Positions 3,801-59,403 of a DNA stretch of 64,000 nucleotides are shown here, in pieces. Each line of letters starts with the position of its first letter. Position 1 is the stretch's first letter. Origin of the DNA: Adineta vaga (taxonomy: Eukaryota > Animalia > Rotifera). Under the pieces are notes generated by a model. The model made no database searches, was not told where the DNA came from, and saw only the letters and a list, made by a program, of their open reading frames with translations. The stretch lies in the NCBI GenBank assembly GCA_021613535.1, contig CP075497.1, positions 1-64,000 on the forward strand, read 5' to 3'. A program made the translations under genes and the position numbers.

Positions 3801-4552
3801 TCTAACTAATTCCATTATTTGTAAAATCTCTCCCTATTCTCAAAAACACACATTTTATTTTCAATCGCCAATAACCAACACCTAAAAAGAAACATTTCAA
3901 ACACATTAAAAATGATAAAAATCAAAATTAAAAAAGAAAAAATAAATTGAAAACCACATTAAAAACCTCACTAAAACTCATTAAACTACATTATAATACA
4001 TTAAAATGCATTAAAAATTCACAAAATCCATCAAAATGCAAAAAACATTCATTAAACAACGTTAATACCTATTAACCTACATTAATACTCCTCAAAATGC
4101 ATTAAAATTCGTTAAAATCCATTAAAATGAAAATACAAAGAAATAACCAAAAAGAAAAATACAATGTTACACATATAATAATCGCTTGATAAAGATAATC
4201 ATTCAAAAGGCCTCGCGTTATAAAAGTTTATTTCCTCTCCTCAATTCTTCCATATATTAAATTATTTATTTATTTATTTCCTTACTTATTTTTTTCTTTC
4301 TTGTTAATAATTATTTATTTTTGTTCATATTTTGTCTCTTTTTTTCTTTATAAAAAATAAAATTATATAAAAAAAATTATTTTTTTGTTGACTTGTTTTG
4401 TTTAAAGAAACTCCTTCTCTCTAAGTATTATAAACAAAGTTTTTATGAGAATTATTTTGTACTGAAACAAATTAGACAAATATCATTGAACATTCTTATC
4501 TAATCCGAAAAGATTTTATAATATAGTTTTATTAAAATATTTTGTATTATAT

Positions 4553-4897
4553 TTAAGCATAACATGCCGTAGAAGTATTTATATTATCAGTCCATTTACA
4601 ACGATATCCTATGCAACATCCTGTACCAGCTAAAATAATTCCAGCTTTACAACCTTTAGTTCCTATTTTTCCACAACATCCACTATATTGACATGATGCT
4701 GATGAACAACAATCATCTTTAGTTTTACATGTATCACCTAATTTTGCACATAATTTCACACTTTCATATGGAAGTTGAGGAATAAATGGTTCATGAGTAA
4801 TAAGAATTTCAGGATCATAATCTATTATTCTTGAGAAAATTCCATTTTCGATAATAATAAATACAAATAAAATACCAATCAAACCTTTCTTCATCAT
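4553..4897 (-). CDS. Secreted 12-Cys peptide with two tandem inhibitor-cystine-knot-like motifs
   Basis: Hydrophobic N-terminus, spacer, then C-x6-C-x5-CC-x4-C-x4-C immediately followed by C-x7-C-x10-CC-x4-C-x11-C. Confidence 0.75.
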   Translation of the reverse strand: MMKKGLIGILFVFIIIENGIFSRIIDYDPEILITHEPFIPQLPYESVKLCAKLGDTCKTKDDCCSSASCQYSGCCGKIGTKGCKAGIILAGTGCCIGYRCKWTDNINTSTACYA

Positions 4898-5515
4898 TTC
4901 TTAATTTCTAATAACGAGTTTAAACAATAATAACTATCGAATATATATGTATATAAATAAAGAAAAACAAACCTAATGACGATATATAATTAAACGTCAT
5001 ATCGATTTTAATTCATCTATATGACGTACATTGGTTTTTTATCCTTGAATAAAATAATACGTAAAAGAAATAGATTCAATGTATTATTTCGATACAATAT
5101 ATGACTCACTATTAAGGACATTTTCAGTTTCATACGAATTGAATTACATTTGCACTTAATCAAAATCTTATTTATAATATTATTCAGTTTTATATAATAG
5201 AAAATATTATTTCGATTCGGAACTTACGAGAGAACCTCACCAACTGATGCCCTCCATTTAAGCTCATATTTTGCTCATAGAAAGGGTTCACAGTGTATAT
5301 GGGAACCCTAAATGGATTCGTCCCCATAATTTGTTTTTGACAAGATATAGCATTTCTAGTCCATTTTCTAGGGTAAATCAAATCTTTAAATTTGTGTCTA
5401 AAACTTTGCTCACATAAAGCTCTCCACTAGACTAACACTTATCCATTCAACTAATAATTCTGATATTATATTTGATTTATTATTATAAAAGAATCACTTT
5501 TGCTAAAAAATTGAA

Positions 5516-6375
5516 TCAGAAAACTTGTTGCAGAATAAAAATCATGTTCATAAAAATAATTTGATAAAAGGATGATATCATCATCGATTGACCACTTGGA
5601 TATGGAGCTAAGAATTTGTCAAAATCCAATTCAATAGTACTTTTTTCACGAATTAAATCTCCAGTTTTTGATGTAGTACAATTATCTGATCCACATAGAA
5701 TCTCTATTTGTTCAGAACGTGTTTGATTAGTTATGTTTAATACAACTATACGTTCAACAAATGTTGGTGACGTGTAACCTTGTCTTTGACACGTTGCGCA
5801 TATTTTGCTTGATGTTTCGTCGTAAAAATATTCCGCTGTACATTGTGTACATTCATGTAGTTTATCTGGAGGAGTTTGATAACAAGACTCATCAGTTTGA
5901 TTTGAAAAAAATAAACATAAACGACCATCATAAGTACCACTTGCAGGTAATATCTTTTTAAAATAATCAAATTCATCTTTTATTGTTAAGGATTCTAATA
6001 AACGTTGGAGTACGCTCACATTATTACATCTATCGGTTGAACAAAGATATTCAAATGAATATTCTACTCGTTGATTCGATCCACTTCCATAATCACGCGC
6101 AATAGCAGTAACAGAAAGTAAATGTGCTGATATTAATGATTCATTTGTAGTTTTATAACGATTCAGTTCAATACGGGTTTCATTTCGATCCAAGTACCAT
6201 ATTACTTTAATCTGACACAATGGATTTGCAGCTGCGGTCTGACAAGAATTGAATTCCGATGGAATATTGTCAGTCGTAATTGTATAATTGTATGTCACGT
6301 ATTAGACGTACAACAAGATATTTCACATGATACTTTATTAAATACCATGAATATAACAAATAAATGAAATAACAT
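5516..6375 (-). CDS. Cys-rich secreted/GPI-anchored protein, two Ly6/uPAR-like modules (frameshift near 6300)
   Basis: Signal-peptide-like MLFHLFVYSWYLIKVSC from ATG 6375 is out of frame with ORF 6298-5516; CSTDRCN and CGSDNCT module ends; hydrophobic C-tail. Confidence 0.55.
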
Positions 6376-7092
6376 AGTTGATTTAACGAGTTTATCTTGT
6401 AAATGTTTTATTTTATCTGAATAAAAGCATGTAAATATATACGGAGAGAAAGTAGTATACAAAATAATGCGTCAGATGTGACGAAACATGTTGAGATAAC
6501 ATTAGTCAGATTTGTTTTGTGTTGTGGATAAGTTTGTTGTGGCAACCGATGACGTGTACAACATAGAAGGATGGATATAGAACTAAAAAGATGAAAGAGT
6601 TTAAACCGGTCAGGTAGATGTTTAAAAAATATTCAAAATTACCAAAGAATTCGTGCATACACGCCTTTATTCTCAAGATATTGAATTTCCAAGATGTATA
6701 AAGCGAAAAATGGGTGAGTGGATGGACACTGCATAACCTATTTTTCAGACGTATTTTTTTCATCAACTTTCTGGTTTTGGAAGACAAACGAAGAACGATT
6801 AATCGAACGGCATTTGGCAAAGATTTGATCCGTTTTGATTAAAATCAAGTTATTATTCATACAAGTCACCTCGAAATATTGAAAACGTTTTCAGATATTC
6901 CACTTATTGTTTATGAATGTAATGATAAAATTCACCTTGATGAAAATTCAGGTCAAATAAAAATGGAATAAATTTTCCTCTGTATTTTTTCTTTTCAAGT
7001 TAGTAATTCAATGACAAAAAGATCTTTATTAATATCACATTTTTCCAACTTTGCAAATACTAATAATGTTAAATGATAAAATGCAGTTTTTA

Positions 7093-9361: not shown

Positions 9362-10132
9362 TCAAAGTTCATTCTGTTGATATTTAATATGATTCCACGA
9401 TAGATAATTAGTGCTAAAAAGTAGGATGGTTACGAAGATGATAAACACAGCACCACAAATAGCAAGGAACCATAAAATACCATATCCTAAGTTTTGCAAA
9501 GGAGTTCTTGTAGATGCTTCCATTTCTCCATTCATTCTTGCTTCCCAAATCAAATGTCTATAAGTAGAATGTGTGATATTGATAATATCCTCATCTTCAC
9601 CATCAAACGCGCCAGCAAACCTCACGGAACTAACTGGTTTGAGCAATGTTTCATATCGATCAGAACATAATCTTTCAACTAGACGAAAAACCACTTCTTG
9701 ATGATCGTTTCCGCAATCAAGAGCAATCGCACCTACAATAGCTTCGAAACAACTCGCGTAGACTTTTACACTGAGTATTTGACGTCCATTACCGCGTATC
9801 ATATATTCATTCAGATGCAATTTTTCTTGTGCAATTTCAGCTAAAACAGCATTTGGAACAATTGTTTGAGTACCTTTGTGTAACAAATCAGAACTTGTAA
9901 TCACTTCTTCACGTCCATTCAGGATTAAATACCTAGCAACAGCATATTTAAGTGCAGAATCACCAAGAAATGCTAGTGCAGAATAATCATGAGTATGAGC
10001 CATTGGATGTCTTTCATATATGGCTGATTGATGAGTCAAAGCTTGTCGAAGTAAATCTTTATTTTTGAACTCATATTGAAGTTCTTTTTCGAGGTCAATC
10101 AATGGTTTCACTTCTATATAATTTGTCGCCAT
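9362..10132 (-). CDS. RNase III catalytic-domain protein with C-terminal transmembrane helix and no dsRBD
   Basis: YEFKNKDLLRQALTHQS, LAFLGDSAL, VPNAVLAEIA, CFEAIVGAIALD; hydrophobic GILWFLAICGAVFIIFVTILLF near the C-terminus. Confidence 0.85.
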   Translation of the reverse strand: MATNYIEVKPLIDLEKELQYEFKNKDLLRQALTHQSAIYERHPMAHTHDYSALAFLGDSALKYAVARYLILNGREEVITSSDLLHKGTQTIVPNAVLAEIAQEKLHLNEYMIRGNGRQILSVKVYASCFEAIVGAIALDCGNDHQEVVFRLVERLCSDRYETLLKPVSSVRFAGAFDGEDEDIINITHSTYRHLIWEARMNGEMEASTRTPLQNLGYGILWFLAICGAVFIIFVTILLFSTNYLSWNHIKYQQNEL

Positions 10133-10585
10133 TTTCTCTAAATATCCTGTTTTTAATTCCAATCTAAAAATCGGAAAAGAAACTTTAAATTCGTTGAAAT
10201 TATTATATAATCAAAGTTATTTTTACTGTAACAATGACTAATAAAATCAACAAATGTTGTATAAATCTAAATATAATTACTTTGTCAATAAACATATTCA
10301 TTGAATAGTCTGTATTATCGAAATTAATAAGCAATTTATTATGACTAAGTTAATGACACAACTTAATTAGTTATTGCTTTTATAACAAGACTAATTCAAA
10401 TAATATCAAATTGTCAAGAAGAATGATAAATGATAAATGTTTATATTCTTTCGATTATTTGACTAAATTAATAATTCTCATCAATTGTCTAATGTACCTA
10501 AATCAAACAATGCTTGTCGAAAATCATTTAAACTGTTGGCCACGGTTTTAGTTTTTTAGATCCTGAAATACATATGTATTTATTC

Positions 10586-18084: not shown

Positions 18085-18116
18085 GGTGTGTGTGAGGGTG
18101 TGAGGGTGAGGGTGTG
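18085..18116 (+). repeat. Interstitial telomere-like (TG)TGAGGG array
   Basis: GGTGTGTGTGAGGGTGTGAGGGTGAGGGTGTG. Confidence 0.8.
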
Positions 18117-30402: not shown

Positions 30403-31298
30403 TTATCTTCGTAAAAGAAATATTTTTTCACACACTACATATCAATAAATAGAAACAGCAAAAAAAGCTATTGGTTGATACATTTTATCCATCACTAAGA
30501 TTGATAAAAAGATGACTCTATATGTCATAAATGTTGCATTCTTGATTGAACAGTGAAATGAAATATAAAGGTTCTTCGAGGCGGAAAAATCCTTCAGGTT
30601 TTCTGATCCATCACATCTGATTGCGGAGGTGAGTGTACCATGAGAAAATGATCAAGAGTATAGTCCTCTATGCAAATGCGCGTTTGGCGAAAATTTCGGA
30701 GACGTTGTGATGATGTATAAAATCTTTTAAATAAATCCCCTTCTGTGGTTCCTATCGTTGTTATAACATATGTAGTTTTCGGTTTGAAAGGTTCTGAACG
30801 AATATGTTAAGATCGCATGTCTATATTAATTTATTGATAAAGACCATTGAACTACTACAGTAGTATGAATTTGTGAAGTTCATCGATTGGAACAGAATAA
30901 CATCTAAACCAATATGTATTCAGCAGTTAAAACATGCAGTATAAAGAAATCCGAAAAAATATTATCTTTGATAACTGTACTTCTTGGGCCAAGATATTGT
31001 ATCGAATGTCACAGAACAGAAGAATGGTAGAAAGATGAAAAACACTGAGGGAGTAATTCGTTATAATACACCCGCTATATGACAGAAAAACCCATTTGGT
31101 AACGACGTATAGTCGTCGTCGTCGTACGCATTTTTTGTTTCGAACCAATCAAGATTGAATCTTATTATGCGCTTCTCTCTTTCTATTCTTCCAGTCTGAC
31201 GCCAAATTAACATGTGAAAAAACCCAAAGAACAGACAAAATGGTGCCCGTTTCTAGTTACTTTTATGGAAGCAGACATTTTTCTTTTAAAATAATAAC

Positions 31299-34200
31299 AT
31301 GACGACTGACACTGTTAGTGAACAAGAACTCCGAAAATGTCTCGAAGAAAGTATTCAGAAAGTTCAAATAGCAATCAATCAAATTAAATCGAAAAAAGAA
31401 TCTAGAAATGACACATTAGTGACTGAAATAACAAGCAGTGAAAATATTTATTCATTTCCATTAAACCAATGGGAAGAAAACGTCATGATTGATTTTCAAC
31501 GAGATTTCGAAAAAAATGTCATCAAACAAATAACAAAATTAGAGAATTCTTGTCGACAATATTTTCTAGATGTTTTGCACCAGTTTAATTACGATAATGA
31601 AAAAATGGAATTTACAGAACAATTTAACATCGGTATGCTTGGAATATTTGCTCGAGAATTGCAGACTCGTTTAGCTTCAATTGATGGTTATCGAGCAGCA
31701 TGGAATGGTGACAAGCAAGCAGTCGATCAATTTCTTAACTTATATCCATCTGTTAAAGATAAATCTGCCCTTTGGGGTACAACACTACTCTATTCTGCAG
31801 CTCGAAAGGGTCATTTAGATTTAGTTATAAATCTCATTGAGCATCATCAATGTTCAGTTAACGCACAAAATCGACAACATATTCTGCGAGCATTAGCTAG
31901 TTCAGGTCATAGTAGTGCGTATTACGACAGTAATCCGAGAGCCGGTTCAACACCTTTACATGGTGCTTGTTATTATAATCATTTGAATGTCGTAAAATAT
32001 TTAATTGATCATGATGCAGATTATTATATTGAAAATCAAGCTGGAGAAATACCATTTATGCATGCTAAATGTCATCCAACTATTTTGGAATATTTTCGAG
32101 AATTGTTAATATTTGGATATTCTTCGCAATCAGATCATTTTCCTGAAAAACCTATCGATGACAATGGAGATATGCGAATCATCGGTTGTTTTTGAGAATA
32201 CAAGCCCTTTGCTGATGAGCGATGGTTTCAGTTTTCTTCATATGAATCATCACAAATACAAGAATCACTGATATTAGAATCAAAGAAAGAATTTCACCGT
32301 GAAATTTATTTAAATTTAGTCAAACGTGTATACAGTATTTGTTTAATGAAATTTCTTCGTTCTGGTAGACATCTTAATTATAGCGAGAACTTAGCTTGGA
32401 TACGATGTCGAGGTTCCTCATTTGTCAATTTCAGTTGCTATGCATTATGGCAAATCTTCTTAATAAAACATCCAGATGCATTAGCAGATCCGATTGTTGA
32501 TATGATCAATATTTCTACGAGTTATGACAGTCGGTTTGAAATTCATCTCAAAACCTGGTACTTTTGTAATACACAAACGAACGAACAGTTAGACAAAGGA
32601 ATGAAATATCATCGAAGATATGTCAATATCAAAATTCCTTTGATTAGTGATGAATTGCTAACATTTAACCTTGAAACATTTGCATTTACTGATTATAAAA
32701 ACACAATACAAGGTCATCTACGATGGATTCCAAAAATGATTTCTAACAATTCAAAAAATACAAATGAAATTATTGATATTGATGAATATGCAACAATGAC
32801 AAACATCCATCCGATACCACTAACAACTTCACGTGTGAATTATGTTTCAGAAATAAACGAAGAAAAAGTAGTTGAACCATTGAATGATGAAAATGATAAT
32901 GATCTAATACAAAAAGTAAACTTTTGATAAATACAATATCCATTTATCTTTGTGTTTCTGCGATTTAGATTCCTGATACACCTCTCAAGATCACTCAATC
33001 TTTAACTGGATTCTTTAGCATACCATCACCATTGTCTGATCATTCAATATCGGAAGATGAGTATATAAATGAAGAAAATAGCAATACTCTATCATCACCA
33101 GAATCTGTCATTATTGAAAGATCTTGTTTGTGTGACAATATAGAAGTTCTAACGACTATAGAAAGCACATCATCTGAACTCAACGAAAAATATGCTGAAC
33201 TTCAACGTGATTTAGATGCTAAACACTAAGAAAGCATCCGTGAGTTAATTCAATGTATTGAAACATTGGAATTAGAAAAGAAAACACACGAAGAGAAACA
33301 AATACAATTGTTAGAGATTTCAATGACAATTCGCAAAGTAGAATATATCAATATTCACAAGGAAATTTTGCAAGATTTTTTAATCCCCAATAATTCATTT
33401 ATACTCAATTATTTACGTCAAACAAATATAAATATTGATTCGAATTTTCATGATCAACTACCTAGGATGATGTTCAGTCGACAGAATAGTTCTTCTATTG
33501 TAACTCTTGAAGGTTTTCAAGAACATCATGATCAATTTAAAGCAATTCTCAAACGAATTCAAATCTTATTAAATACCATACAATCAGCAAAAGATTTCTA
33601 TCAACGACATTTAAATCGTACAATGAATTCAATCATCCAAGAAGTTTTACCAAAAGTAACACCTCGAACACAAATCTGGTGTGAATATACACAAGTATTT
33701 TCTCAATTATTTCGTGATAAAAATATCGAATATAAACGATTATTCGATGATCATATTGATAATAAACTATAATTGATGGTTGAACAATGTATTTTAAATA
33801 ATACAATAGATTTTTGGAAAGAAATAAATATCGAAACAGATCAATTTGTTGAAGATCATTTATTTATTGATGAAGTTGAGTCATTAAAACAGAAAGCATT
33901 AGATGAATTTATTCAAGAGAATATTTCTCTTCAACATTTTAAATTCGAATCTGAACCAACTCAACAATCGATTTCTATTATACATTATTTTATTGAAAAA
34001 GTTAAAAAGAATTTCAAATCGATTCGAAATATCGAGGTAATGGAGTGCAACATTTTAACTTCATACCAAAATTATTAGAGAGACTTCTAATACATTATTC
34101 TTGTTTTAAAATTCAATTACCATTGTACGAATCATCGAATGATTTATTAACCCAAATAGAAGATCATCTAATTACAACTATTTCAACATCAACTGGATCA

Positions 34201-37200
34201 GGTAAATCAACATTATTACCAGCTCTGTTGATTGCCGAAGGATATGATAAAGTGATTGTTACACAACCACGACGTTTACCATGTCAATTAATATGTAAAC
34301 GTGTTAATGAAACGATGCTCTTAGATAAAGGATCATTACCAAAGAAACTAGCTGGATGGATAGTTAGTGGTGATAAAAAGAATTCTCAAGGAAAAGTTCT
34401 CTATTTAACTGATGGTTTACTCAAAGAACGTTTACTCCATGATGAAACGTTAATTACTACGCATACAGAATTAAATAAATCTGTTGTTTTCTTTATTGAT
34501 GAAGTTCATGAACGATCAGTTAATATTGATCTATGTTTAGCATTGTTAGCACGTTTACTATCAGACAAACCAGAATTACAAACCAAAGTCAAAGTGATTG
34601 TTTCATCTGCTACACTTGATTCATCAGTACCGAATCTCTTTCGACGACTTTTTCCTTGTCAGATTACTAAATTTGAAATACCCCTAATGGGCACACGTTA
34701 TCCAGTACAACTAATTCATCGTCCGAAAAAGAATATCATCGATATTGTTCAAGAATTATGTAAAAAACGTAAACGACATGATCAAATACTTTGTTTTGTT
34801 AGTTCCGTATCTGAAGTGAATCAATGTTGTCGTTTAATTACTGATGTCAGTCAAGGTACAATTGTAGCTTATCCACTTGTACAATCTCAACATCCAAATG
34901 TTCAACAAGCAAATATTGAACATGGAACATTATTTTTCTCGACGACAGTTGCAGAAACTTCATTAACATTTCCTTCATTGAAATATGTTGTTGATACAGG
35001 AATGATTAACATGCCTGTTTATGATATTGACTCGAAACGAACGATACTAAAAGAGGTTCGAGCTGCTGAATCAACATTAAAACAACGTTTAGGTCGACTT
35101 GGTCGAACCCACCCGGGTGAATATTATTCTTTGTATAGTTTTCAACCCAGTGATGTTTCTTATCCTGTTCCACAAATTCGTCAATCAGATCTGATGAACT
35201 TGGAATTTTCATTACGAAAATCACCAATGAAGAGAGGTTTAAATTATTTAAGCACATATTTACCAGATTCACCGTCGCCACAATCAATTAAGACAACAAT
35301 TAAACAATTACAAGAATTGGACATTGTCGAAAATACACCTACTAATCAATTAACTGCACATGGCAAAGAACTTGCTAAATTACCAGATTTCAGTTCATTG
35401 GCTATGTCAAAAGCTGTCCTAGCTGCATTGAAAACTTATGATTGTGGTCATGATTTGATATGTCTCGCTTCATGTATAGGTGTTCTCAACACTACAACCA
35501 TGTTTCGAAGTATACCTTTAAATTTCAAAAGTCTCAATGGAGATTTTATGACTTTGCTAAATCTAATGAACAGAATACTGTTAGTACAACAATCGACATT
35601 AGTAAGAGATGCAAATATCGACGATATTTGTAAAGTTATGGGTCTACATCATATTCAGCATTTTATCAAACGAGTTTTAAAACGTTATTCAATTTTAGAA
35701 AGCTTTTTTAATTCCTCAATAGATTTTCGATGGGAAGCTCAACGAAAATCTAATAGTTGGGAATTGATCGCTAAGGCTTTATTGGCTGGTTATAGTGATA
35801 ATGTTTTTATTTCCATGAAAGATTTTCAAGAACGTACACATCATTTTGTTCGACATAATAATTTGAATGATATAGCTGTTCTTGATCTACAATCGACTTT
35901 AATTCGTCCGATTAATGAACCTCCTGTTTCGATTGTTCTAACGAGAGATATTCGTCGTTCAACAGCTGTTCGAGCAACAGCAATTCTTTCATTTATTGGA
36001 GAAATTAAACCAGAGTGGATTAATTATCGAATGAAACGACAATTTCACATTACTGCAAACGAACAATTGCAAGTGAATAATGGAAATAAATTTCTTCAAG
36101 CAATACAAAAATTTCTCAATCGAGTTAAAATGTTATTTCAAGGAGAGGATATCGTTCTGGAAGGTTTATCAGGCGATGTTCTAAATGCTGAATTTCATCT
36201 TCCACAAAAGATGATTTCGGAATTAAGATTCGATTTAAAAACATTAGCTAAACCAAATCCTCATGAAAATTTCTTACGTAATCTTGAAAGTCTCACAAAA
36301 ATGATACGTATTTTTAATCCATTAATATGGCGATGGAAAGCACAAAAACAAGTTGATATCACTATTAATACAATTACAACAACAACAAAAACATTGGAAA
36401 TTATTGTTCAAGGAAGAGATTCAGTTAATCAACAACTAAAAGATGAATTTCAATCATTTATTGATTGGTTACAATATTGTGCTGTTATTTGTTATCCAAA
36501 TGCTGGTAAGAAAAGGATGATTTAATTCCCTCGACTGAAAGGAGATTTTGAATCATATAGGTCTATCTCCACGTGTTCTTCGACCACAAATGCGTTATCA
36601 ATGTATGACATTGAAGAAAGAATCGTTCGTGTCACTGACAGGTCAAACGAACATTGATTGTATAATGGAATAAAAGGTGTCAATGCTACACGTGAGACAC
36701 GAATGGAAGTTGTTGCCTGGATTGCTATGCAAATTTGATTGTCGATTAGGTGGTTTTGTTCGAGATTGGATTGTTGGTCAGCGACCAACAACTACTTTAA
36801 AACCACGCTTGATTGAATACAATGTGATTCCATCAATAAACAAAGAAGTTGTTCCTGTGATTTAGATTGTCACTTGCCGAGCCATGCTTATTTCGATAGT
36901 AGCATGCATAAGAATTGTATAAATATGGTATAACTTGTTCAGTCGAACAGACAAGATTGGAAATATGTACTATTATTTGAGTCTGCTTCGACGAGCGTTA
37001 TTTATTGAAAATGAAGTAACAGGTCCATTTACAATGGATTTGATTGAGCCTCATATTGCATTAGCATATGATCGAATTGATTTTGATGTTAATAATTTAA
37101 CTGTAGAAAAAGATTATACACATGAACTGGGAATGCGTATTGATATTACAAAAGAACCTTATTCAATTGAATTGAAACAATCATTGAAAATATTAAAAAA

Positions 37201-37924
37201 AAACATTTTCAACTTCTTCGTCAAGAAGATTTTCATATGAAACAACGTATTGATAAAATGATAAATATTCGAAAATGGACAAAAATCAACGAAGAATTAT
37301 CAATTATCCCTAAACCACATTGGAAATATCATGTCGTATTGGTTCCTCTTTCACATACGGCTGTTTTATATAAGGAAATCAAACATAAAATGAGTCATAT
37401 TCCCAATTTAACAATTTTATCAATTGAAGAAATTCGAAATCCATCATTAGAAGAAACTTATGAGGGAATGAAAAAATTGATTAAGAAAGAATGTTCGAAT
37501 CGAAATCCTAATGAACAAAAACTTTTTCATGGAACTAAAGTGTGAAGGAATTGATGGTATAGCTAATAGTGGTTTTGATGATCGATATTATGCTGTTGGC
37601 ATGTATGGTAAGGAGTTTTATGCATGAAAATTCAATATTTCTGTTCTCTTTTGTACAGATCGTGGTTCTTATTTTGCCGATAATCCACTAAAATCTCATG
37701 GTTTTACGAGTTCGGATCCAACAAAAAGAAATACACGTGTTATGTTCTACAGTAAAGTACTTATTGGAAAGCCTTATATTTTAAAAGCAGCAAATAAAGA
37801 TTTGATGGCAGCTCCAAAAGAATTTCATTCAGTGATTGGACAACATTCACCACAAACAGAATATATCGTTTACCGTTATGGACAAGCTCTTCCATATTTA
37901 AAAATAATCTATCAAGGTGGATAG
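31299..37924 (+). pseudogene. Giant ankyrin-WWE-coiled-coil-DEAH helicase-nucleotidyltransferase-PARP gene, disrupted
   Basis: ANK (TLLYSAARKGH, TPLHGACYYNH); WWE-like segments; helicase motifs TGSGKST, TQPRR, DEVHER, SAT, QRLGRLGR; GGFVRDW..DLD..RIDFDVNNL; PARP LFHGT, GSYFAD, EYIVY. In-frame stops at 32193, 33227 and 33770 plus frameshifts. Confidence 0.85.
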
Positions 37925-37986
37925 TCATTCTACATGATTTTTCTTTTTCTTAATAAAGCAATTAAATGTTGTGATTCAACAATGCG

Positions 37987-38064
37987 TGAGGGTGAGGGTG
38001 TGGTTATATGGGGTGCGGGTGAAATATGATTTCCACACGTAAACCACACGCACCCTCACCGTCA
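37987..38064. repeat. Inverted telomere-like arrays just after the PARP-gene poly(A) signal
   Basis: TGAGGGTGAGGGTGTGGTT (37987-38005) and AACCACACGCACCCTCACCGTCA (38042-38064); AATAAA at 37952. Confidence 0.75.
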
Positions 38065-38608
38065 AGCTTGTAAAATGCATTCAAAGCAGACATAAGGAAG
38101 GCGGAATAGAGAGAATTCAGTCGAAGGTCAAGCAGGTCAGCCTCGATGAACGTTATGTATTTTATTTATTGAAATAAACCAATGACATATAAAATTAAAC
38201 TTTATTAAAAATTAAAATTATTTATTGAGACAGAAAAGAACGATATCGATGATCTCAGTGAATCAAAATAAACTTACTTTGAATAGAGGATAGAGGTCCT
38301 CTTATCAATAGGAAATTGCAATATACACTAATTCGAAGGATCGGTCATATATATGTATATGTTTCTTTGTCGGTCAGTTGCCATATACATTCGGAAACCG
38401 ACGGGTTATTCCTTCATTAGGGCAAGGGTGTAGATCTTCTTATGATTTATATTTATATTCACATCCACTCCCTTAAGATGCCAGTGAATTCGTATTTCAT
38501 TATCTATATTTATAAAATAAAGAGTATGATAACATGCATGTAGATAGACAGAAAAAGAACGCAAGATAAACTATTATAAAATTTTCTTTTGCACCCTCAA
38601 GTCAACAA

Positions 38609-41600
38609 ATGTTTTGTCTACTTCATAACAAAATTCTTCTTTTTCTGACTTTTCTTTGGTCAGTCAATACTAGTCATCGATCAGTTCCATTTGACGTACG
38701 AATCGATCATCATAAAACCGAAACTACTCGTGATTTGATAGTCAATACTGCAAGACCACACTTTTCCTGGAAATGTTCTAGTTTAGACACTGTTCTACAG
38801 CGAAATATTCGACAAGTTGCCTATCAAATTCAATTACACTCAATAAATTTATCATCAAAAGAAAGACCGTTCCAGTGGGATAGTGGACGTGTCGTTACAT
38901 ATCAATCTACACATGTTCCATATACAGCTCAGACTGATCTCCTATCATCGACTTATTATTGCTTTCGAGTACGAGTTTGGTTGACTAATTCTGAGGAATC
39001 AAGTTCATGGACGGATTGGATTCAATTTCGCACTCCTATGTTTAATTTACATGATTACATCATCAACAATACCGATCTGCTTTGGATTGGCTCAACAGAA
39101 ATTAATATGAATGAATTACGAAAGGAGTTTTTCGTTTCCAATAATAGTCGGATCAAATCTGCAATTGTTTATCTTTGTGGTTTAGGATACTATCAATTCT
39201 ATCTCAACGGTGAAAATGTTGATCCCAGTCGCAAATTAGATCCTGGTTGGACTACGTACGAGAAACGTACTTTACTCGTATCATTCGATGTTACTGCCAA
39301 TATAACCGTATGACATGCAACGTTTGTTTTCCTTCTCTTGAAGGCAATTTTTCTTTTACATCTATTTAGATTGGTATGAATGCTGTGGGAATAAAGTTGG
39401 GCAATGGTTGGTATAGTATCGAACAGAGTGGACGGAAAACATATGGTAAATAAGAAACGTTTCTTTCACTTGTCTTATATTAGTTATTCTGTGTTTACTA
39501 ATTTTCGGTCCACCTCGTTTGTTATTTATTTTATTGATTATATTTGAAAATGGAACTCAAATGAACGTTGTTAGCGATCGGACATGGACGGGTCGAGAAG
39601 GTTCAATCAAATATGATGGTGTTTACAATGGTGAAATCTATGATAGTCGGAGCGATCGATTGAATTGGACTCGACCTGGATTCAATGATTCTCGATCAGC
39701 ATGGATCACTCCAGAATCCTTAGATTCGCCTGTTAACGATTCATCGATGGGAATACTAATACTTCAAGATATGCCGCCTATTCGTGCAGGACCAGATGCA
39801 CTACATTTTGAAGTAGTGATCAACGGATCACAGCAAAGTTATCTAAAGCGTGAAGATATAGATAAAATTCAAGGTGCTTCCTTCACTGATGACGGTATAC
39901 TGAAACCGGTGAATTCGTGGATATCCGATTCAGGTATGTTGTCTTACAGATGAAGAAAAAAGGTTAAAGATGAATCTTCTGCGCAGGTGTTCGCACATTT
40001 GATCTTGGTCAAAATATAGTTGGATGGTGTCGTATCAGATTTCAAGGCTCACGTGGCTTTCGTACTTCTATTCGTTATGCAGAGATATTAGTACAGCCAG
40101 TCGTCTCTACGAAGTGAGTCACTTCTTTCCTTTCTCTATTAATACGATGATCTTTTTCTAGTGTTGCCACTCATAATCTCAACATTGAAAACCTTCGTAA
40201 CGCCACGGCATCGGATATCTACGTTCTCCGTGGCGATCCTCTCGGTGAAGTTTACGAGCCAACGTAGGAAATATATTGTATTATTTCTTACCTATATTCA
40301 CTGTGATTCTTCTTTTTAGTTTTACTGTTCATGGTTTTCGTTATTTGTCAGTTTTTAGTTCACCAAGTGCTCTAACTACAGATGACGTTCAATGTCTTGT
40401 TGTTCACAGTGAAACTACGTTGAAAGGTCATTTTAGCACAAGTAATCCGATTATTAATCAAATTCAGCACAATATTCAATGGGGTCAATTGAGTAATTTG
40501 ATGTCAATACCTACGGACTGGTATGTAGAAGTTATTCATTTTGCTAAGATTATAGAAAGTCATGTTCATACTTGAATTTATCATAGTCCACAACGCGATG
40601 AACGTCGTGGATGGTTAGGTGATACAGCTTTAACCGTCGATGAAGCCTTATATAATTTTGATCTAATCAAGTTTTATCTAAATTTTCTCAACTTAATCGT
40701 CGATATGCAATTGGATAGCGGCGAAATACCCGACATCGTTCCTGGTACAGGTGGCATCTATCCGGCTGATGCTAATTGGGGAAGTGCCTTACCTACACTT
40801 ACCTGGCAATTATATCGACACTACAATGATGTGAAAATTCTTGAGAATTATTATGACTCTGTTCGTGCTTATGTAGAATCTCTTCGACGTAGCTATCAAC
40901 TGACTGGTCTAGTTAATTTCCCGTGGCGCTACGGTGATTGGCTCCCTGCATCACCAAATCCTCGAACTAACGAACATTTAACAACCTCCTATGCTTTTCT
41001 TCATGATCTTTATCTTTTACTCAATATGTCGCAAGTACTCGAGCAGAGAAATGATACCGATACTTATTCACAGCTCTATCAACAACTAGCAGAAGAATTT
41101 CATCAAGTTTTTTATAATCAGACGACCAAATTCTATGCTGATGGAATGCAAGCAGCACAAATACTAGCACTAGCATTACCTGGCGTTGTTCCGTCAACTA
41201 TTCGAGACTCAATAGTCGATTACTTAGTTCGTAATATTACTGAAAATGGTAATCATGCCACAACAGGTATTGTTTCGACTGCTCAGTTGTATCCGATCTT
41301 ATCGGATCATGGACACCATGATTTAGCATTGGAAATGATCTCTTCTACAACATATCCATCGTACGGTTATATGTTTACAAATCCATATGAGAATGCCACA
41401 ACGCTTTGGGAATGGCTCAACGCTCCCTTTCTCGGTCCAATGAGTTCACGTAATCACATTATGTATGGTAGTGTCGGCGCATGGTTTTACTCACATTTAG
41501 CTGGTATCAATCTTCGAACGAATGAGATCATCATACAGCCAAAAATGGCATCTGAATCAAAGAAACATCTGCTAACTAAACTGGACTGTCAACTAAGTAC

Positions 41601-41892
41601 ATTATATGGCCTCGTACATGTTTCATACACGCGTGATGAACATGATACAGTTGCTAACTCAATTTTACTTCGGGTAACTGTGCCAGTGAATGTCCGAGCT
41701 CAAGTGATATTTGAACCATTATTTACGAATGCACAATGCATAGAGTTACTCGAAAATGATGCTCTGATTTGGTCACCTGATCTTGGTAACAATAAGAATC
41801 GACAAATTCTTGTACAGCAAGATTCAATCACAGATGCAATGATCGTACATATTGGCTCTGGTCAATATCAATTTCAAGCACGGTGGAAATAG
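38609..41892 (+). CDS. Secreted alpha-L-rhamnosidase (GH78), bacterial-type, with spliceosomal introns
   Basis: WDSGRV, GLGYYQFYLNG, LDPGWTTYEKR, YNGEIYD, FDLGQN, HGFRY, IPTD, PQRDERRGWLGD, ATTLWE, SRNHIMYG; several ~55-65 nt introns, one acceptor reading CG at 39506-39507. Confidence 0.9.
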
Positions 41893-55985: not shown

Positions 55986-57800
55986 ATGCAAATGTTAAAA
56001 ATCTGCTTCTATTTTATTCACTTTATATTATTCTTCGATTTAATTAAATCAAAATATGTATGTATGAATAATTCTGTTCTGACTTGTCAGTGTTCGGACG
56101 ATGCAGGACCTCTTTCGTGTATTGGAAAAAGTGATACAAATGATACTTTTGTAGATTGGTCAACAATTCCTTCAAGTCAATATGGTCGATCCTATTTTAC
56201 TTTTACGAATATAAGTCGTCTCAGTTACTTAACTTTTATTAATTTCACCAATATATTTATTAACTCTTACACATTAGATCTGACATTTATTGATGGTTTA
56301 GACGAAATAGGAGAAAATACTTTCTATGAATTTATTCATACTGATAACTGGATGATCGAACTTAATTTGACTTCTCCACGAGATTTTCAACTAGCTGATT
56401 ATGCATTTGGTCGTTCAGATTATTTTACACTCGTTATTCAAGATATTCAATATAGTTATATCTATAAACTTCCATATAAATTTAATTTAAAAGCTTTGTA
56501 CAATACAACAATCTACGAATTAACTATTAGAAATTCAGGTGAAATCGATTTTATTCCTACGGAATCATCAACTATTAATATATATCGATTACTATTAGCT
56601 GATTGTTCAATAAAAAATGTTACGCCTCTAATGGAAGCTCTCTCAATATCTCTCCAATATATAAATTTTTACTCAATTAATTTAACTGAATTACCATCAA
56701 TGACTAAATTCAAACAATTGAGTAAAATTTATTTACGAAATAATTCAATTGAAGAAATCAAATTAAATACATTGTCTCATATGCCTCGATTCACCACTCT
56801 TGATTTATCAAACAATCGAATTAAACAAATAGCACCTGACACATTTATTGGTTCGAATTTAATTACTTTGTATTTAGATTCTAATTTTCTTACATCAATA
56901 TCGTTTTTATATCCATTAAGTCAATCATTATCTTTTCTTACATTATCCAATAATTTTATAGAAGATTTAAATCCACTGAAGGAAATGTTCGAATTAATTA
57001 TTTTGGATATTTGTTGTAATAAAATTAACAAAATCGATGAATTTAATTTTAATAAATTATTCCGACTGACCTCAGTTGATTTAAGTTATAATGAAATTGA
57101 ATTTATTCATCCAATGGCTTTTAATGGTACAACGATTAGTTCTTTAAAGTTGGATGGAAATTTATTGTCTTCTCTTGAAGTTAATCTTACTGAAACAACA
57201 TCATTTCTTTATAGTATAGCATCAACAATTCTATCTTTATCATTTGTTAATTGTACAAAATTCTTCTATATTAATTGGTATGTTTTAACAAAACTTCAGA
57301 CATTACGTCAATTAGATCTCTCTGGAATAAATAAGACTGATCAATTTTGGTCTTATCGAGTAATAGATAATGATACAATGATTAACTGGTTCCATCGACC
57401 TTATATAATTCTGAATGATATTCAATTTACTGATCATGATTATTGTTTATCGACATCCATCACTCACATATTGAATCAAACAGTTTTGTTTGTTGATGAT
57501 AATCATCAATGTAATTGTTTTATATATAAATATAAACATTTATTTGTGAAAGAACAACGTCCATTGTGTATGTCTAATGAGATGATTATGGCAAAATTAA
57601 GTACACGATGTGCTGATATAGATTTACTTTGTGATGGATCATTAATATCGAAAAGCAATCAGCAATGGCGAATAATTTTAGCTGCAGTAATTCCTTCGGT
57701 ATTTATTCTTATCATTGTTCTGTTTTTACTTGGTGTTTATATTAACAAAAGAAAAAAACGAAGAGTCGTCATTGAAACTTCAGAAAATGTAGACAATTGA
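55986..57800 (+). CDS. Type I membrane LRR protein with short cytoplasmic tail
   Basis: Signal peptide, CxC cap, LxLxxNxI repeats, CNC C-cap, TM IILAAVIPSVFILIIVLFLLGVYI followed by NKRKKRR. Confidence 0.9.
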   Translation: MQMLKICFYFIHFILFFDLIKSKYVCMNNSVLTCQCSDDAGPLSCIGKSDTNDTFVDWSTIPSSQYGRSYFTFTNISRLSYLTFINFTNIFINSYTLDLTFIDGLDEIGENTFYEFIHTDNWMIELNLTSPRDFQLADYAFGRSDYFTLVIQDIQYSYIYKLPYKFNLKALYNTTIYELTIRNSGEIDFIPTESSTINIYRLLLADCSIKNVTPLMEALSISLQYINFYSINLTELPSMTKFKQLSKIYLRNNSIEEIKLNTLSHMPRFTTLDLSNNRIKQIAPDTFIGSNLITLYLDSNFLTSISFLYPLSQSLSFLTLSNNFIEDLNPLKEMFELIILDICCNKINKIDEFNFNKLFRLTSVDLSYNEIEFIHPMAFNGTTISSLKLDGNLLSSLEVNLTETTSFLYSIASTILSLSFVNCTKFFYINWYVLTKLQTLRQLDLSGINKTDQFWSYRVIDNDTMINWFHRPYIILNDIQFTDHDYCLSTSITHILNQTVLFVDDNHQCNCFIYKYKHLFVKEQRPLCMSNEMIMAKLSTRCADIDLLCDGSLISKSNQQWRIILAAVIPSVFILIIVLFLLGVYINKRKKRRVVIETSENVDN

Positions 57801-59403
57801 TCAGAGATGTCTATTTTTATCGCATTGGAATTTTTGCTTAGGTTTTATTCGCTTTTTAAATTTATCCCACGAAACTAGAAGATAGCACCGTTTACTTTTT
57901 TTGTTTTAATTACTTTCTCATCCGTACAAGTAATTTGTCTATAAGAGTTGATGACTAAGCATCTTGAGGGTGTAGGTGTTAAGTTTGAACAAATAGAACA
58001 CCACGAGCAGTTTTCATTACGATTATATGATTTCCCCGACTGAAAGGAGAGTCATGTTCGGAAAAATGTTACAAAATTTTTGGAAATGCGTTCGTATGTA
58101 TGTGTGTTTGTCCAGGGTCAAAGGTAAAAAACATCGATTTGGTGCATAACAAAGAATCAGAGGAAATACATATGTTCCTTTAAAAGTGAATGAAAAAAAC
58201 ACCATATACTGGAAGAGTGTGTAGAGACGACAAGACGTTGGATAGCTGAGTTGTACCCTCGACTGAAAGGAAGGTCATGGGGCAGAAAAGTGTGATCGAC
58301 AAGAAGAATTTGCTTGCATGTATGCTTGTCACGGATCAACGAAATGGTAACGAGACCTCTCGAAGTTTGTTATGGTGTCCTTAGTATAGTTCACTTGAAT
58401 GATGGGGATAGATAAAGAGAATGGAGAAAGACGTGAATCACTTTGCATGTATATCTCTACTCGCTCGTAGCTCATTCCTTTATCGTACGCACATAGTCAA
58501 TTCCTATTATATGAAGGATGAAGCGCATCTTTAAGCCCAAACTTGTATTCAACTATATCAACGCATTGAATGGTGAAATATGCAAGAATGCAAAAACCAC
58601 TAATCAGATTTGGAAGTTCAGAAGTTATGAAATAGTCTTTCTAGTCGAAGAATGTACGTGAAGCGATTGTGGAAAACCGAGTGATTGCATTTCTGCGGGA
58701 TAAATCTGTTTACAATTATCTCGATTCGATGAGTATTCACCACTTAGATATGGGATAATTATTAGTCAAACTATCCAGTAAGTCGATAGACTGCGGAGAC
58801 TTTGCAGTGGATAGCTGCTCCCTGTACTGTCTTTTTATGTCTATGAAAAGACCGAGATAGCCTAGGTTTACAGCTGTAAAATATGCTATGTTATCACAAA
58901 AAATTCATGATTTGAATGATGAAAGAGAAATGTGTTTTGTAGAATAACTGTCAAAAGAAGTTGTTTCGGCCTGTAACGGTTACATTTCGATAGGTATTAT
59001 TAACTAAGAATATTCGAGATATAAGAGGAATAGTAATTAAGTCGTGGTTATCAAGCATTGTTTAGGTCAGAATAAATATTCTATTAACATGTAAATAAAA
59101 ATGTTTCATAGTAGAGAGGATATCTGTGATTAATATTATTTGATAGCTGAGTCAGGATTGAGCTTTTTCAGTCGAAGATTAAGCGAGTCTCACTCGAAGA
59201 GCGTTATTTATTTTTAAAGAATTTTGGATATAGGTGCTATTAAGAGACATCTAATTCACACCCACACCCTCACCCGAACAAGCAGCCATATGGAAAAACT
59301 CTGCTGTGTATCATACTTGCTATAAATATCAGTGTCAAAAATCAAATAAGAATGGTATTTTTTGGGATATCTTGATTATGATCAGAGTTAGAGGATCCGT
59401 GAC

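Follow-up and report, generated by a model that had tools for sequence, protein, structure and literature searches.

ZAP (PARP13), PARP12 and PARP7 share a domain plan in which an RNA-binding module lies N-terminal to WWE domains and a PARP fold closes the chain, and tankyrases 1 and 2 carry N-terminal ankyrin repeats ahead of a SAM and a PARP domain (ANK-SAM-PARP). Features of both plans meet in a protein family of the bdelloid rotifer Adineta vaga, which we describe here from a locus in the first 64 kb of contig 6 (assembly of 100.8 Mb in six contigs); this whole stretch of 64,000 nucleotides is referred to as the window. The rotifer proteins depart from ZAP, PARP12 and PARP7 in that their RNA module is a DEAH/RHA helicase and not a set of CCCH zinc fingers, and in that a nucleotidyltransferase head is inserted before the PARP domain; this segment of nucleotidyltransferase fold, between helicase and PARP, is called the X domain. 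From the tankyrases they differ by having few ankyrin repeats, no detected SAM domain and ~1500 residues of other domains in between. A functional analogy may also be drawn with TRAMP (Trf4/5, Air1/2 and Mtr4), which likewise brings together a 3'-to-5' RNA helicase and a template-independent nucleotidyltransferase of the polymerase-beta type; TRAMP, however, is made of separate proteins, with a Ski2-like helicase, a Cid1/Trf4 transferase and no ADP-ribosylation, whereas the rotifer domains lie on one chain.

At 31299-37924 of the window, on the plus strand, ankyrin repeats, a tandem WWE pair, a linker, a DEAH/RHA helicase, the X domain and a PARP domain are collinear in four exons. A first-pass annotation of this DNA had proposed just such a series (ankyrin repeats, two WWE segments, a DEVH-box helicase, a nucleotidyltransferase-like head and a PARP domain retaining H-Y-E), and every element of it was recovered through Pfam, AlphaFold models compared with Foldseek, and matches to the PDB. 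We hold with moderate confidence that the locus is a gene-sized, dispersed duplicate (31131-37940) of the annotated gene I4U23_011334 that is decaying to a pseudogene, that its intact relatives are ANK-WWE-helicase-X-PARP proteins with a putative RNA-modifying mechanism, and that the surveillance of foreign or transposon RNA is their likeliest role.

The fusion of these domains is real, since an intact paralog on contig 5 holds a single uninterrupted open reading frame (ORF) of 2111 codons, which begins at the N-terminus, takes in the ankyrin repeats and the helicase and reaches the start of the PARP domain, after which comes one short intron. Whole-protein analyses were made on public proteins or on such uninterrupted paralog ORFs. 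Intact relatives measure ~2100-2250 residues and consist of a helical N-terminus, ankyrin repeats, tandem WWE, an acidic/helical linker, the DEAH/RHA helicase, a small region, the X domain and a tankyrase-like PARP domain; an alignment of 28 full-length proteins spans their whole length, and annotated full-length proteins occur in at least nine bdelloid species or strains, which, together with the contig 5 gene, bears out, on the ORF level, the earlier proposal of a single polypeptide. A full-length search returned ~100 clusters with near-complete coverage, and all of the named ones are bdelloid, the hosts being Adineta vaga, A. ricciae, A. steineri, several Rotaria and Didymodactylos; beyond the bdelloid clusters the score drops from >900 to 135 bits, and the matches share only ankyrin repeats or the helicase core. 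These proteins are already in public databases as unnamed products, and searches of open-access papers and preprints found no account of a helicase-X-PARP family, in agreement with the annotation's remark that no protein with this combination had been described. We regard it as a hitherto undescribed variant of the RNA-linked PARPs that merits biochemical work.

Pfam recognises the ankyrin repeats on the window ORF 31299-32195 (Ank_2, E 2e-21) and Helicase_C on the ORF 34045-36525; the WWE and nucleotidyltransferase parts had no Pfam match on the window sequence itself and were tested on the family instead. The WWE family (PF02825) matches 17 of 27 members, with a best E of 4e-5, and in the 27-member alignment W17/E18, W27 and E34 of the first unit are invariant (W299, W309 and E316 in the numbering of I4U23_011334), as is a set of aromatic and Arg/Trp residues in the second. 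A sequence search of this region against solved structures gave no match; its AlphaFold model, of moderate quality (predicted local distance difference test, pLDDT, 72.5), has two beta-rich units with one helix each, and Foldseek returns nothing but WWE domains among its first 23 matches, with the tandem pairs of ZAP/PARP13, DTX1 and Deltex at the top. The tandem model is best matched by the ZnF5-WWE1-WWE2 region of ZAP, and by analogy the rotifer pair would read ADP-ribose.

Helicase motifs I (GSGKS), II (DEVH), III (SAT), V and VI are intact in the window ORF 34045-36525 and are followed by winged-helix, ratchet and OB-like parts. Searched against the PDB with phmmer, the paralog helicase finds Prp16, HrpA, Prp22, DHX8 and DHX15 at E ~1e-36, in an alignment that runs through the winged-helix and ratchet parts up to DHX15 residue 613; Pfam HA2 and OB matches are weak, and present in 2-6 of the 27 members. 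Matches of the post-helicase region to the PARP14 and DTX3L KH models of Pfam were confined to single members and below threshold.

The X domain is a 254-residue segment with a mean column identity of 69% (27 members) and the invariant motifs EGGF-RDW, D-L-D, T-D-L-E-P-H and I-D-x-D-V, which in the window copy read GGFVRDW, DLD, DLIEPH and DRIDFDVNN. Its AlphaFold model (pLDDT 88.5, predicted template modelling score 0.89) was compared with the PDB by Foldseek, where an A-adding enzyme, CCA-adding enzymes and bacterial poly(A) polymerase come first (E 5e-4 to 1e-2, probability ~1) and TENT5/FAM46, Cid1 and polymerase X rank later; VIA-align gives Z scores of 9.9, 8.9, 8.9 and 8.1 for four class II nucleotidyltransferases, namely the A-adding enzyme, poly(A) polymerase and CCA enzymes, over 158-169 residues, spanning the head and part of the neck, followed by TENT5B (Z 7.8) and more CCA enzymes. 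On the model the invariant G68 and G69 fall between a strand and a helix, the DxD (D111 and D113) on the next core strand and D163 on a later strand, an arrangement that appears to be that of the polymerase-beta-type transferases. In a way that recalls class II enzymes, GGxVRD is followed by DxD, and a downstream D-x-D-x-x-N is placed like motif B; GGFVRD and DxD are both invariant, but a hairpin insert of 30-40 residues separates them and puts DxD ~40 residues downstream. The annotation had placed a nucleotidyltransferase fold at 36.7-37.2 kb, and the segment at 36.6-37.3 kb does fold in this way according to AlphaFold, Foldseek and VIA-align.

The lack of a sequence match to Pfam PolyA_pol, together with the insert and the missing body and tail domains, weighs against the X domain's being an active enzyme of this class. 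Pfam PolyA_pol (PF01743) had no match to X at E up to 1 in the 27 members, a genome-wide PolyA_pol search found four other loci only and no X domains, and hhalign of X against the rotifer's own CCA-type enzymes, with a profile of two sequences only, gave a probability of 1.5% and 15 aligned columns. No match was returned when the X sequence was searched against the PDB; reading the alignment, we recognised no EDxxR motif, and DRIDFDVSN resembles, without matching, the motif B sequence RRDxTxNA. The label "CCA-type" used in the first-pass annotation was thus overstated, since what is held in common is the class II head fold and a GGxVRD...DxD-like signature, while a PolyA_pol match is wanting and the profile-profile comparison is not significant. 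The domain further differs from class II enzymes in its insert, in being fused to a helicase and a PARP, and in lacking the body and tail domains by which CCA enzymes hold RNA. As modelled, X is a class II-like head fold, and it is no member of PolyA_pol by sequence.

Viral proteins provide other neighbours. Pfam DUF5769 (PF19073) matches 26 of the 27 members under the cut-off of 26.1 bits (best E 1.1e-5), and one short X-PARP paralog above it, at 26.6 bits; a search of the genome with the DUF5769 family model gave 0 matches, and was uninformative as its control also gave 0. Nearest to the X model among predicted viral structures are uncharacterised giant-virus proteins that include mimivirus L685 (Foldseek E 3e-7, template modelling (TM) score ~0.5), and the nearest non-rotifer clusters of the ESM Atlas are from Nucleocytoviricota (TM 0.61), phage Gad2 / poly(A) polymerase head proteins (0.46-0.55) and bacterial PolyA_pol. 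These giant-virus DUF5769-type and phage Gad2 / poly(A) polymerase head proteins, the best structural neighbours of X among predicted viral proteins, occur by themselves or joined to RING, F-box, BTB or ankyrin domains, whereas the rotifer X is fused to a helicase and a PARP. Gad2 has an anti-Gabija role.

With its insert and without body and tail domains, X could therefore be a nucleotide-binding or regulatory module. In its full form this alternative, which we place on the unlikely side, makes X a degenerate nucleotidyltransferase fold that is no enzyme and controls the adjacent PARP domain by binding an RNA end or a nucleotide, the whole protein being a helicase-gated PARP only. It would account for the missing PolyA_pol match, for a large insert within motif A, for the absence of neck, body and tail domains, and for the constant adjacency of X to PARP even in short genes, which is expected of a regulatory domain. 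What speaks for catalysis is that the GG turn, both DxD aspartates, the third Asp and DxDxxN do not vary across 27 bdelloid sequences and persist in Euglena despite an identity of ~30%, and such conservation is usual for active sites.

The PARP domain of the intact paralog scores 62.6 bits with Pfam PARP (PF00644; cut-off 26.7), and its pieces in the window score 19.5 and 13.2 bits, under the cut-off because an intron and a frameshift split the domain. The residues H2048, Y2078 and E2141 do not vary among 28 members and line up with the tankyrase triad; the window translation retains all three. Among solved structures tankyrases 1 and 2 come closest (E 7e-15), followed by PARP14, PARP12, ZAP, PARP15 and PARP10, the matches to PARP12 and ZAP being at E 1e-12 to 1e-10. 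Unlike ZAP, which is inactive, and PARP12, whose triad reads H-Y-I, the rotifer domain keeps H-Y-E.

A search of 1.84 billion representatives with the X profile found 207 proteins; among ten longer X proteins scanned by Pfam, six carry a helicase and/or a PARP beside X and the other four had no other Pfam match. Short genes with only X and PARP exist as well, for example at 329.8 kb of contig 4 and in a 127-member rotifer cluster of ~446 residues, and X-PARP is therefore the conserved core unit. X always occurs together with PARP and, in most cases, with the helicase. On contig 4 (325500-334500) the short X-PARP gene adjoins a gene with ADPrib_exo_Tox and TPR domains (ORFs 4011-4979 and 5500-6657 of the segment, both on the minus strand); the match to ADPrib_exo_Tox, a bacterial-exotoxin-type ADP-ribosyltransferase, has an E of 4.5e-5, just below the cut-off, and the two adjacent genes are of different ADP-ribosyltransferase types.

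Outside the bdelloids, an MMETSP transcript is collinear with helicase-X-PARP at 27% identity over 1100 residues, and EG_transcript_144 (attributed to Euglena gracilis, the species of the papers in which this prefix appears; 1850 residues) has weak ANK, DEAD, Helicase_C, X and PARP matches, with 32% identity to the family over X-PARP and the same X motifs; no WWE was detected in the Euglena homolog. The X motifs are thus kept in both homologs at 27-32% identity, and the putative catalytic residues of helicase, X and PARP are conserved across bdelloids and in Euglena. The homolog search found no other animal homolog, and this patchy distribution suggests horizontal transfer.

The conservation of three catalytic signatures, the domain order helicase-X-PARP, the constant X-PARP pair and the presence of WWE readers together suggest a helicase-fed RNA-end-modifying enzyme coupled to ADP-ribosylation. 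The helicase would load on single-stranded 3' RNA tails, and the adjacent X domain would use a nucleoside triphosphate at the RNA 3' end, uniting helicase and tailing enzyme in a single polypeptide after the manner of TRAMP; the PARP domain would then ADP-ribosylate itself, bound proteins or the nucleic-acid end, and the WWE pair would read the ADP-ribose and concentrate more copies. The annotation had proposed a putative sensor-effector that would bind RNA, tail it or make a nucleotide signal, and ADP-ribosylate targets. Surveillance of foreign or transposon RNA is the likeliest role, in view of the large copy number, the birth-and-death turnover and the kinship of the modules with those of ZAP, PARP12 and PARP14; it counts against this part of our interpretation that a defence role is drawn from analogy and copy-number dynamics. 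By a six-frame search and the X profile, this genome has at least nine loci with the helicase and at least 13 with X, several of them with stops, and the copy number, the pseudogenes and a dying copy near a contig end fit the birth-and-death evolution of conflict genes.

The main rival to a defence role, with X as a non-catalytic PARP regulator being a second and independent one, is that the family serves the response to desiccation or radiation, the PARP domain signalling damage, the helicase and X processing damaged RNA or DNA ends, and the WWE pair reading the poly(ADP-ribose) of PARP1-type enzymes. In A. vaga, ADP-ribosylation is enriched among genes over-expressed on entering desiccation and after rehydration, and PARP-annotated genes are over-expressed in 17 cases after radiation and nine after rehydration (PMC10809525); X also belongs to the polymerase-beta superfamily, which includes repair polymerases. 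We nevertheless find this role unlikely, for the identifiers searched tied none of the induced PARP genes to the helicase-X-PARP family, DEAH/RHA helicases such as this one act on RNA, the PARPs most similar in architecture (WWE + PARP) belong to the antiviral group of ZAP, PARP12 and PARP14, and rapid turnover with pseudogenes suits conflict genes better than repair genes. The identifiers FUN_011334, FUN_027314 and others were not found in published expression data; FUN_016986 appears in Table S4 of PMC10809525 (rehydration) as "unknown" and without Pfam domains, and was left unused as the mapping between FUN_ and I4U23_ identifiers is unproven.

A bolder version of the RNA-surveillance proposal, which we rate as distinctly doubtful, would see in helicase-X-PARP an undescribed three-enzyme RNA machine acting on one RNA end, by tailing and then ADP-ribosylating it or by priming ADP-ribose chains on RNA. 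On this view bdelloids obtained it by horizontal transfer, its donor being a giant virus or a euglenid-like protist, and multiplied it into a germline-encoded defence against viruses or transposons.

Within the window, which has a G+C content of ~30% and short GT-AG introns, the exons of the plus-strand copy were mapped from those of I4U23_011334. A stretch at 31131-31298, a candidate promoter or 5' untranslated region, aligns by blastn with the contig 3 paralog (180 bases, 72.8% identical); homology starts here, with none further upstream. Exon 1 (31299-32915), collinear with exon 1 of I4U23_011334, encodes the helical N-terminal part, the ankyrin repeats (31692-32057, ORF residues 132-253) and the tandem WWE pair (32145-32798, equivalent to residues 283-500 of I4U23_011334). 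After intron 1 (32916-32968, 53 bases), exon 2 (32969-36505) carries the acidic/helical linker, the helicase cassette (34108-36013, inside the uninterrupted ORF 34045-36525 of 826 codons) and the post-helicase region (36014-36505), with faint KH-like hints only. Intron 2 (36506-36560, 55 bases) precedes exon 3 (36561-37607), which holds the X domain (36561-37311), here broken by frameshifting indels and two in-frame stops that lie inside the family profile matches at 36560-37216 and 37168-37311, and the first part of the PARP catalytic domain (37330-37607), with the His of H-Y-E in LFHGT and a one-base insertion at 37542. Splicing of intron 3 (37608-37658, 51 bases) restores the YG-x-G-x-YFA motif, and exon 4 (37659-37924) encodes the second part of the PARP domain, with Tyr in YFA and Glu in EYIVY, and ends in a TAG stop.

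The ORF breaks at 32916-32968 and 36506-36560 are accordingly ordinary GT-AG introns, and a TGA at 37625 sits within the 51-base intron 3 and is no lesion. An explanation of all ORF breaks as introns was rejected, GT-AG borders and correspondence to I4U23_011334 introns being found for three breaks only.

The closest paralog of the window copy is I4U23_011334 on contig 3, annotated and intact with 2161 residues, to which it has 88.5% DNA identity over 6.8 kb. Homology is confined to 31131-37940 and extends into neither flank over 7 kb, so that the window copy is a dispersed, gene-sized duplicate and not a syntenic ohnolog; an ohnolog was rejected on account of the unshared 7-kb flanks and a synonymous divergence (dS) of just 0.15-0.41. 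The ratio of nonsynonymous to synonymous divergence (dN/dS) from this paralog is 0.21-0.42, showing that most of the divergence arose under constraint and that decay is therefore recent. Along the gene, dS is 0.15 in the helicase (34189-36505) and about double that in other parts (0.23-0.41), and the low value may reflect past gene conversion with that paralog.

Contig 6 begins 31 kb before the window copy. A G-rich motif (GGGTGAGGGTGTG and variants) is present four times, at 37984-38067, 18104-18116 and 59257-59275, against a chance expectation of none; these copies look telomere-like, the bdelloid telomere repeat being TGTGGG. One of them forms an imperfect inverted repeat 60 bases past the stop codon of the gene, where homology to contig 3 ends, and may mark the capture of the duplicate at a healed chromosome end. 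Elsewhere, two family members on contig 4, at 9883973-9887323 (plus strand) and 9905928-9909277 (minus strand), lie ~20 kb apart in inverted orientation with equal query scores; one of them has a TAA in its X domain, and the pair looks like a recent inverted duplication of which one copy is already damaged.

Lesions of the window copy were defined codon by codon relative to the intact paralog I4U23_011334. There are three in-frame stops upstream of the helicase, all on the plus strand: a TGA at 32193-32195 in place of the invariant first Trp of WWE1 (TGG in the paralog), a TAA at 33227-33229 in place of Glu (GAA) and a TAA at 33770-33772 in place of Gln (CAA). A one-base deletion in a run of A at 34003-34004 shifts the frame 190 bases before helicase motif I, ~12 frameshifting indels cluster at 36606-37005 within the X domain, and further single-base indels are found at 37173 and 37542. 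The annotation had noted nonsense and frameshift lesions in this copy and expected function to rest on intact paralogs, and both the lesions and an intact paralog are there. The public model of the locus, I4U23_027314, is 100% identical to the window's helicase ORF and has 1627 residues against 2161 in the paralog, with the helicase P-loop lost; it is shortened because it skips the lesions with invented introns, and is an artefact of forcing an open frame through them.

The lesions were compared with contigs of public read runs, which record presence only at a likeness of at least 95%, and in which two DNA runs (X2 and X5) come from different studies. Contigs of both runs cover the TAA at 33227-33229 with no other letter, and this stop is thereby confirmed; as stops and frameshifts at conserved coding positions are what marks a pseudogene, we take the copy as one. 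Its status is not airtight, and here too there is evidence on the other side: run X2 lacks two of the stops, reading TGG at 32193-32195 and CAA at 33770-33772, although X5 has the window's letters at both, and short-read contigs do not show the frameshift cluster. The X2 contig over 32195 has a change at 32129 that is missing from the contig 3 copy, so it is not simply the contig 3 paralog, and we read the stops at 32195 and 33770 as allelic or lineage-specific, with the caveat for both positions that many read variants equal to the contig 3 letter probably represent paralog contigs at 95% likeness. No read contig of at least 95% likeness spans 36577-36775; a 1018-base contig present in both DNA runs fits the window near-perfectly over 37005-37880, and over 36855-37005 differs from the window and from the contig 3 paralog alike. 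The frameshift cluster at 36606-37005, uncorroborated by short-read contigs, thus either belongs to the assembled haplotype alone or is in part an artefact of assembly. Low-level transcription of the locus is also possible, as small, low-depth contigs with 0-1 differences fall on 32596-32698 and 35278-35513 in two runs whose labelling as RNA is a guess. A 6.3 kb contig from the RNA-guessed runs shares only two 18-20-base stretches with the window and is for this reason not from the locus; it is taken, unconfirmed, to be the transcript of a paralog.

These same data bear on whether the window locus is a still working gene, with lesions that are haplotype-specific or long-read assembly errors and another allele that is full-length, which we judge very improbable. 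The two codons read as TGG and CAA in run X2 would suit a working gene, as would the gap at 36577-36775, the departure of a contig (36842-37880) from the assembly at the frameshift cluster, the low-depth RNA-like contigs, a dN/dS well under 1, the position of the 34003 deletion in a homopolymer, where an assembly error is possible, and a read coverage in which the best run contains just 0.82 of sampled words. Decay is nonetheless indicated by the TAA at 33227-33229 in both DNA runs and by the indels at 34003, 37173 and 37542, which none of the read rows shown contradicts; the read contig over 36855-37005, moreover, fits neither the assembly nor the intact paralog and so shows no open frame. 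A variant genetic code, with TGA for Trp and TAA for Gln, was rejected because the paralog codons are TGG, GAA and CAA and the other ORFs are normal.

Beside the decaying copy, at 38609-41892 on the plus strand, lies a multi-exon gene for a bacterial-type alpha-L-rhamnosidase (Ig_Rha78A_N, Bac_rhamnosid_N, Bac_rhamnosid6H at E 1.4e-56, and Bac_rhamnosid_C), which was likely acquired horizontally. Elsewhere in the window, an ORF at 9362-10162 on the minus strand has an RNase III domain (Ribonucleas_3_3, E 4.7e-17), and one of 604 residues at 55986-57800 on the plus strand has leucine-rich repeats (LRR_8, E 2e-19).

In vertebrates, PARPs that carry RNA-binding modules (ZAP, PARP12 and PARP14) have a central part in antiviral immunity, and immune systems in all domains of life make recurrent use of nucleotidyltransferases and helicases; here both are found with a PARP on one chain, with their catalytic signatures conserved. 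The X-PARP pair, at ~450 residues and conserved from Euglena to rotifers, is easy to express and would allow a direct test of cooperation between a nucleotidyltransferase and a PARP on nucleic acid. The family is large and turns over fast, in animals known for the uptake of foreign genes and for heavy RNA-based genome defence, and the window locus provides a dated example of gene death within it, at a chromosome end.

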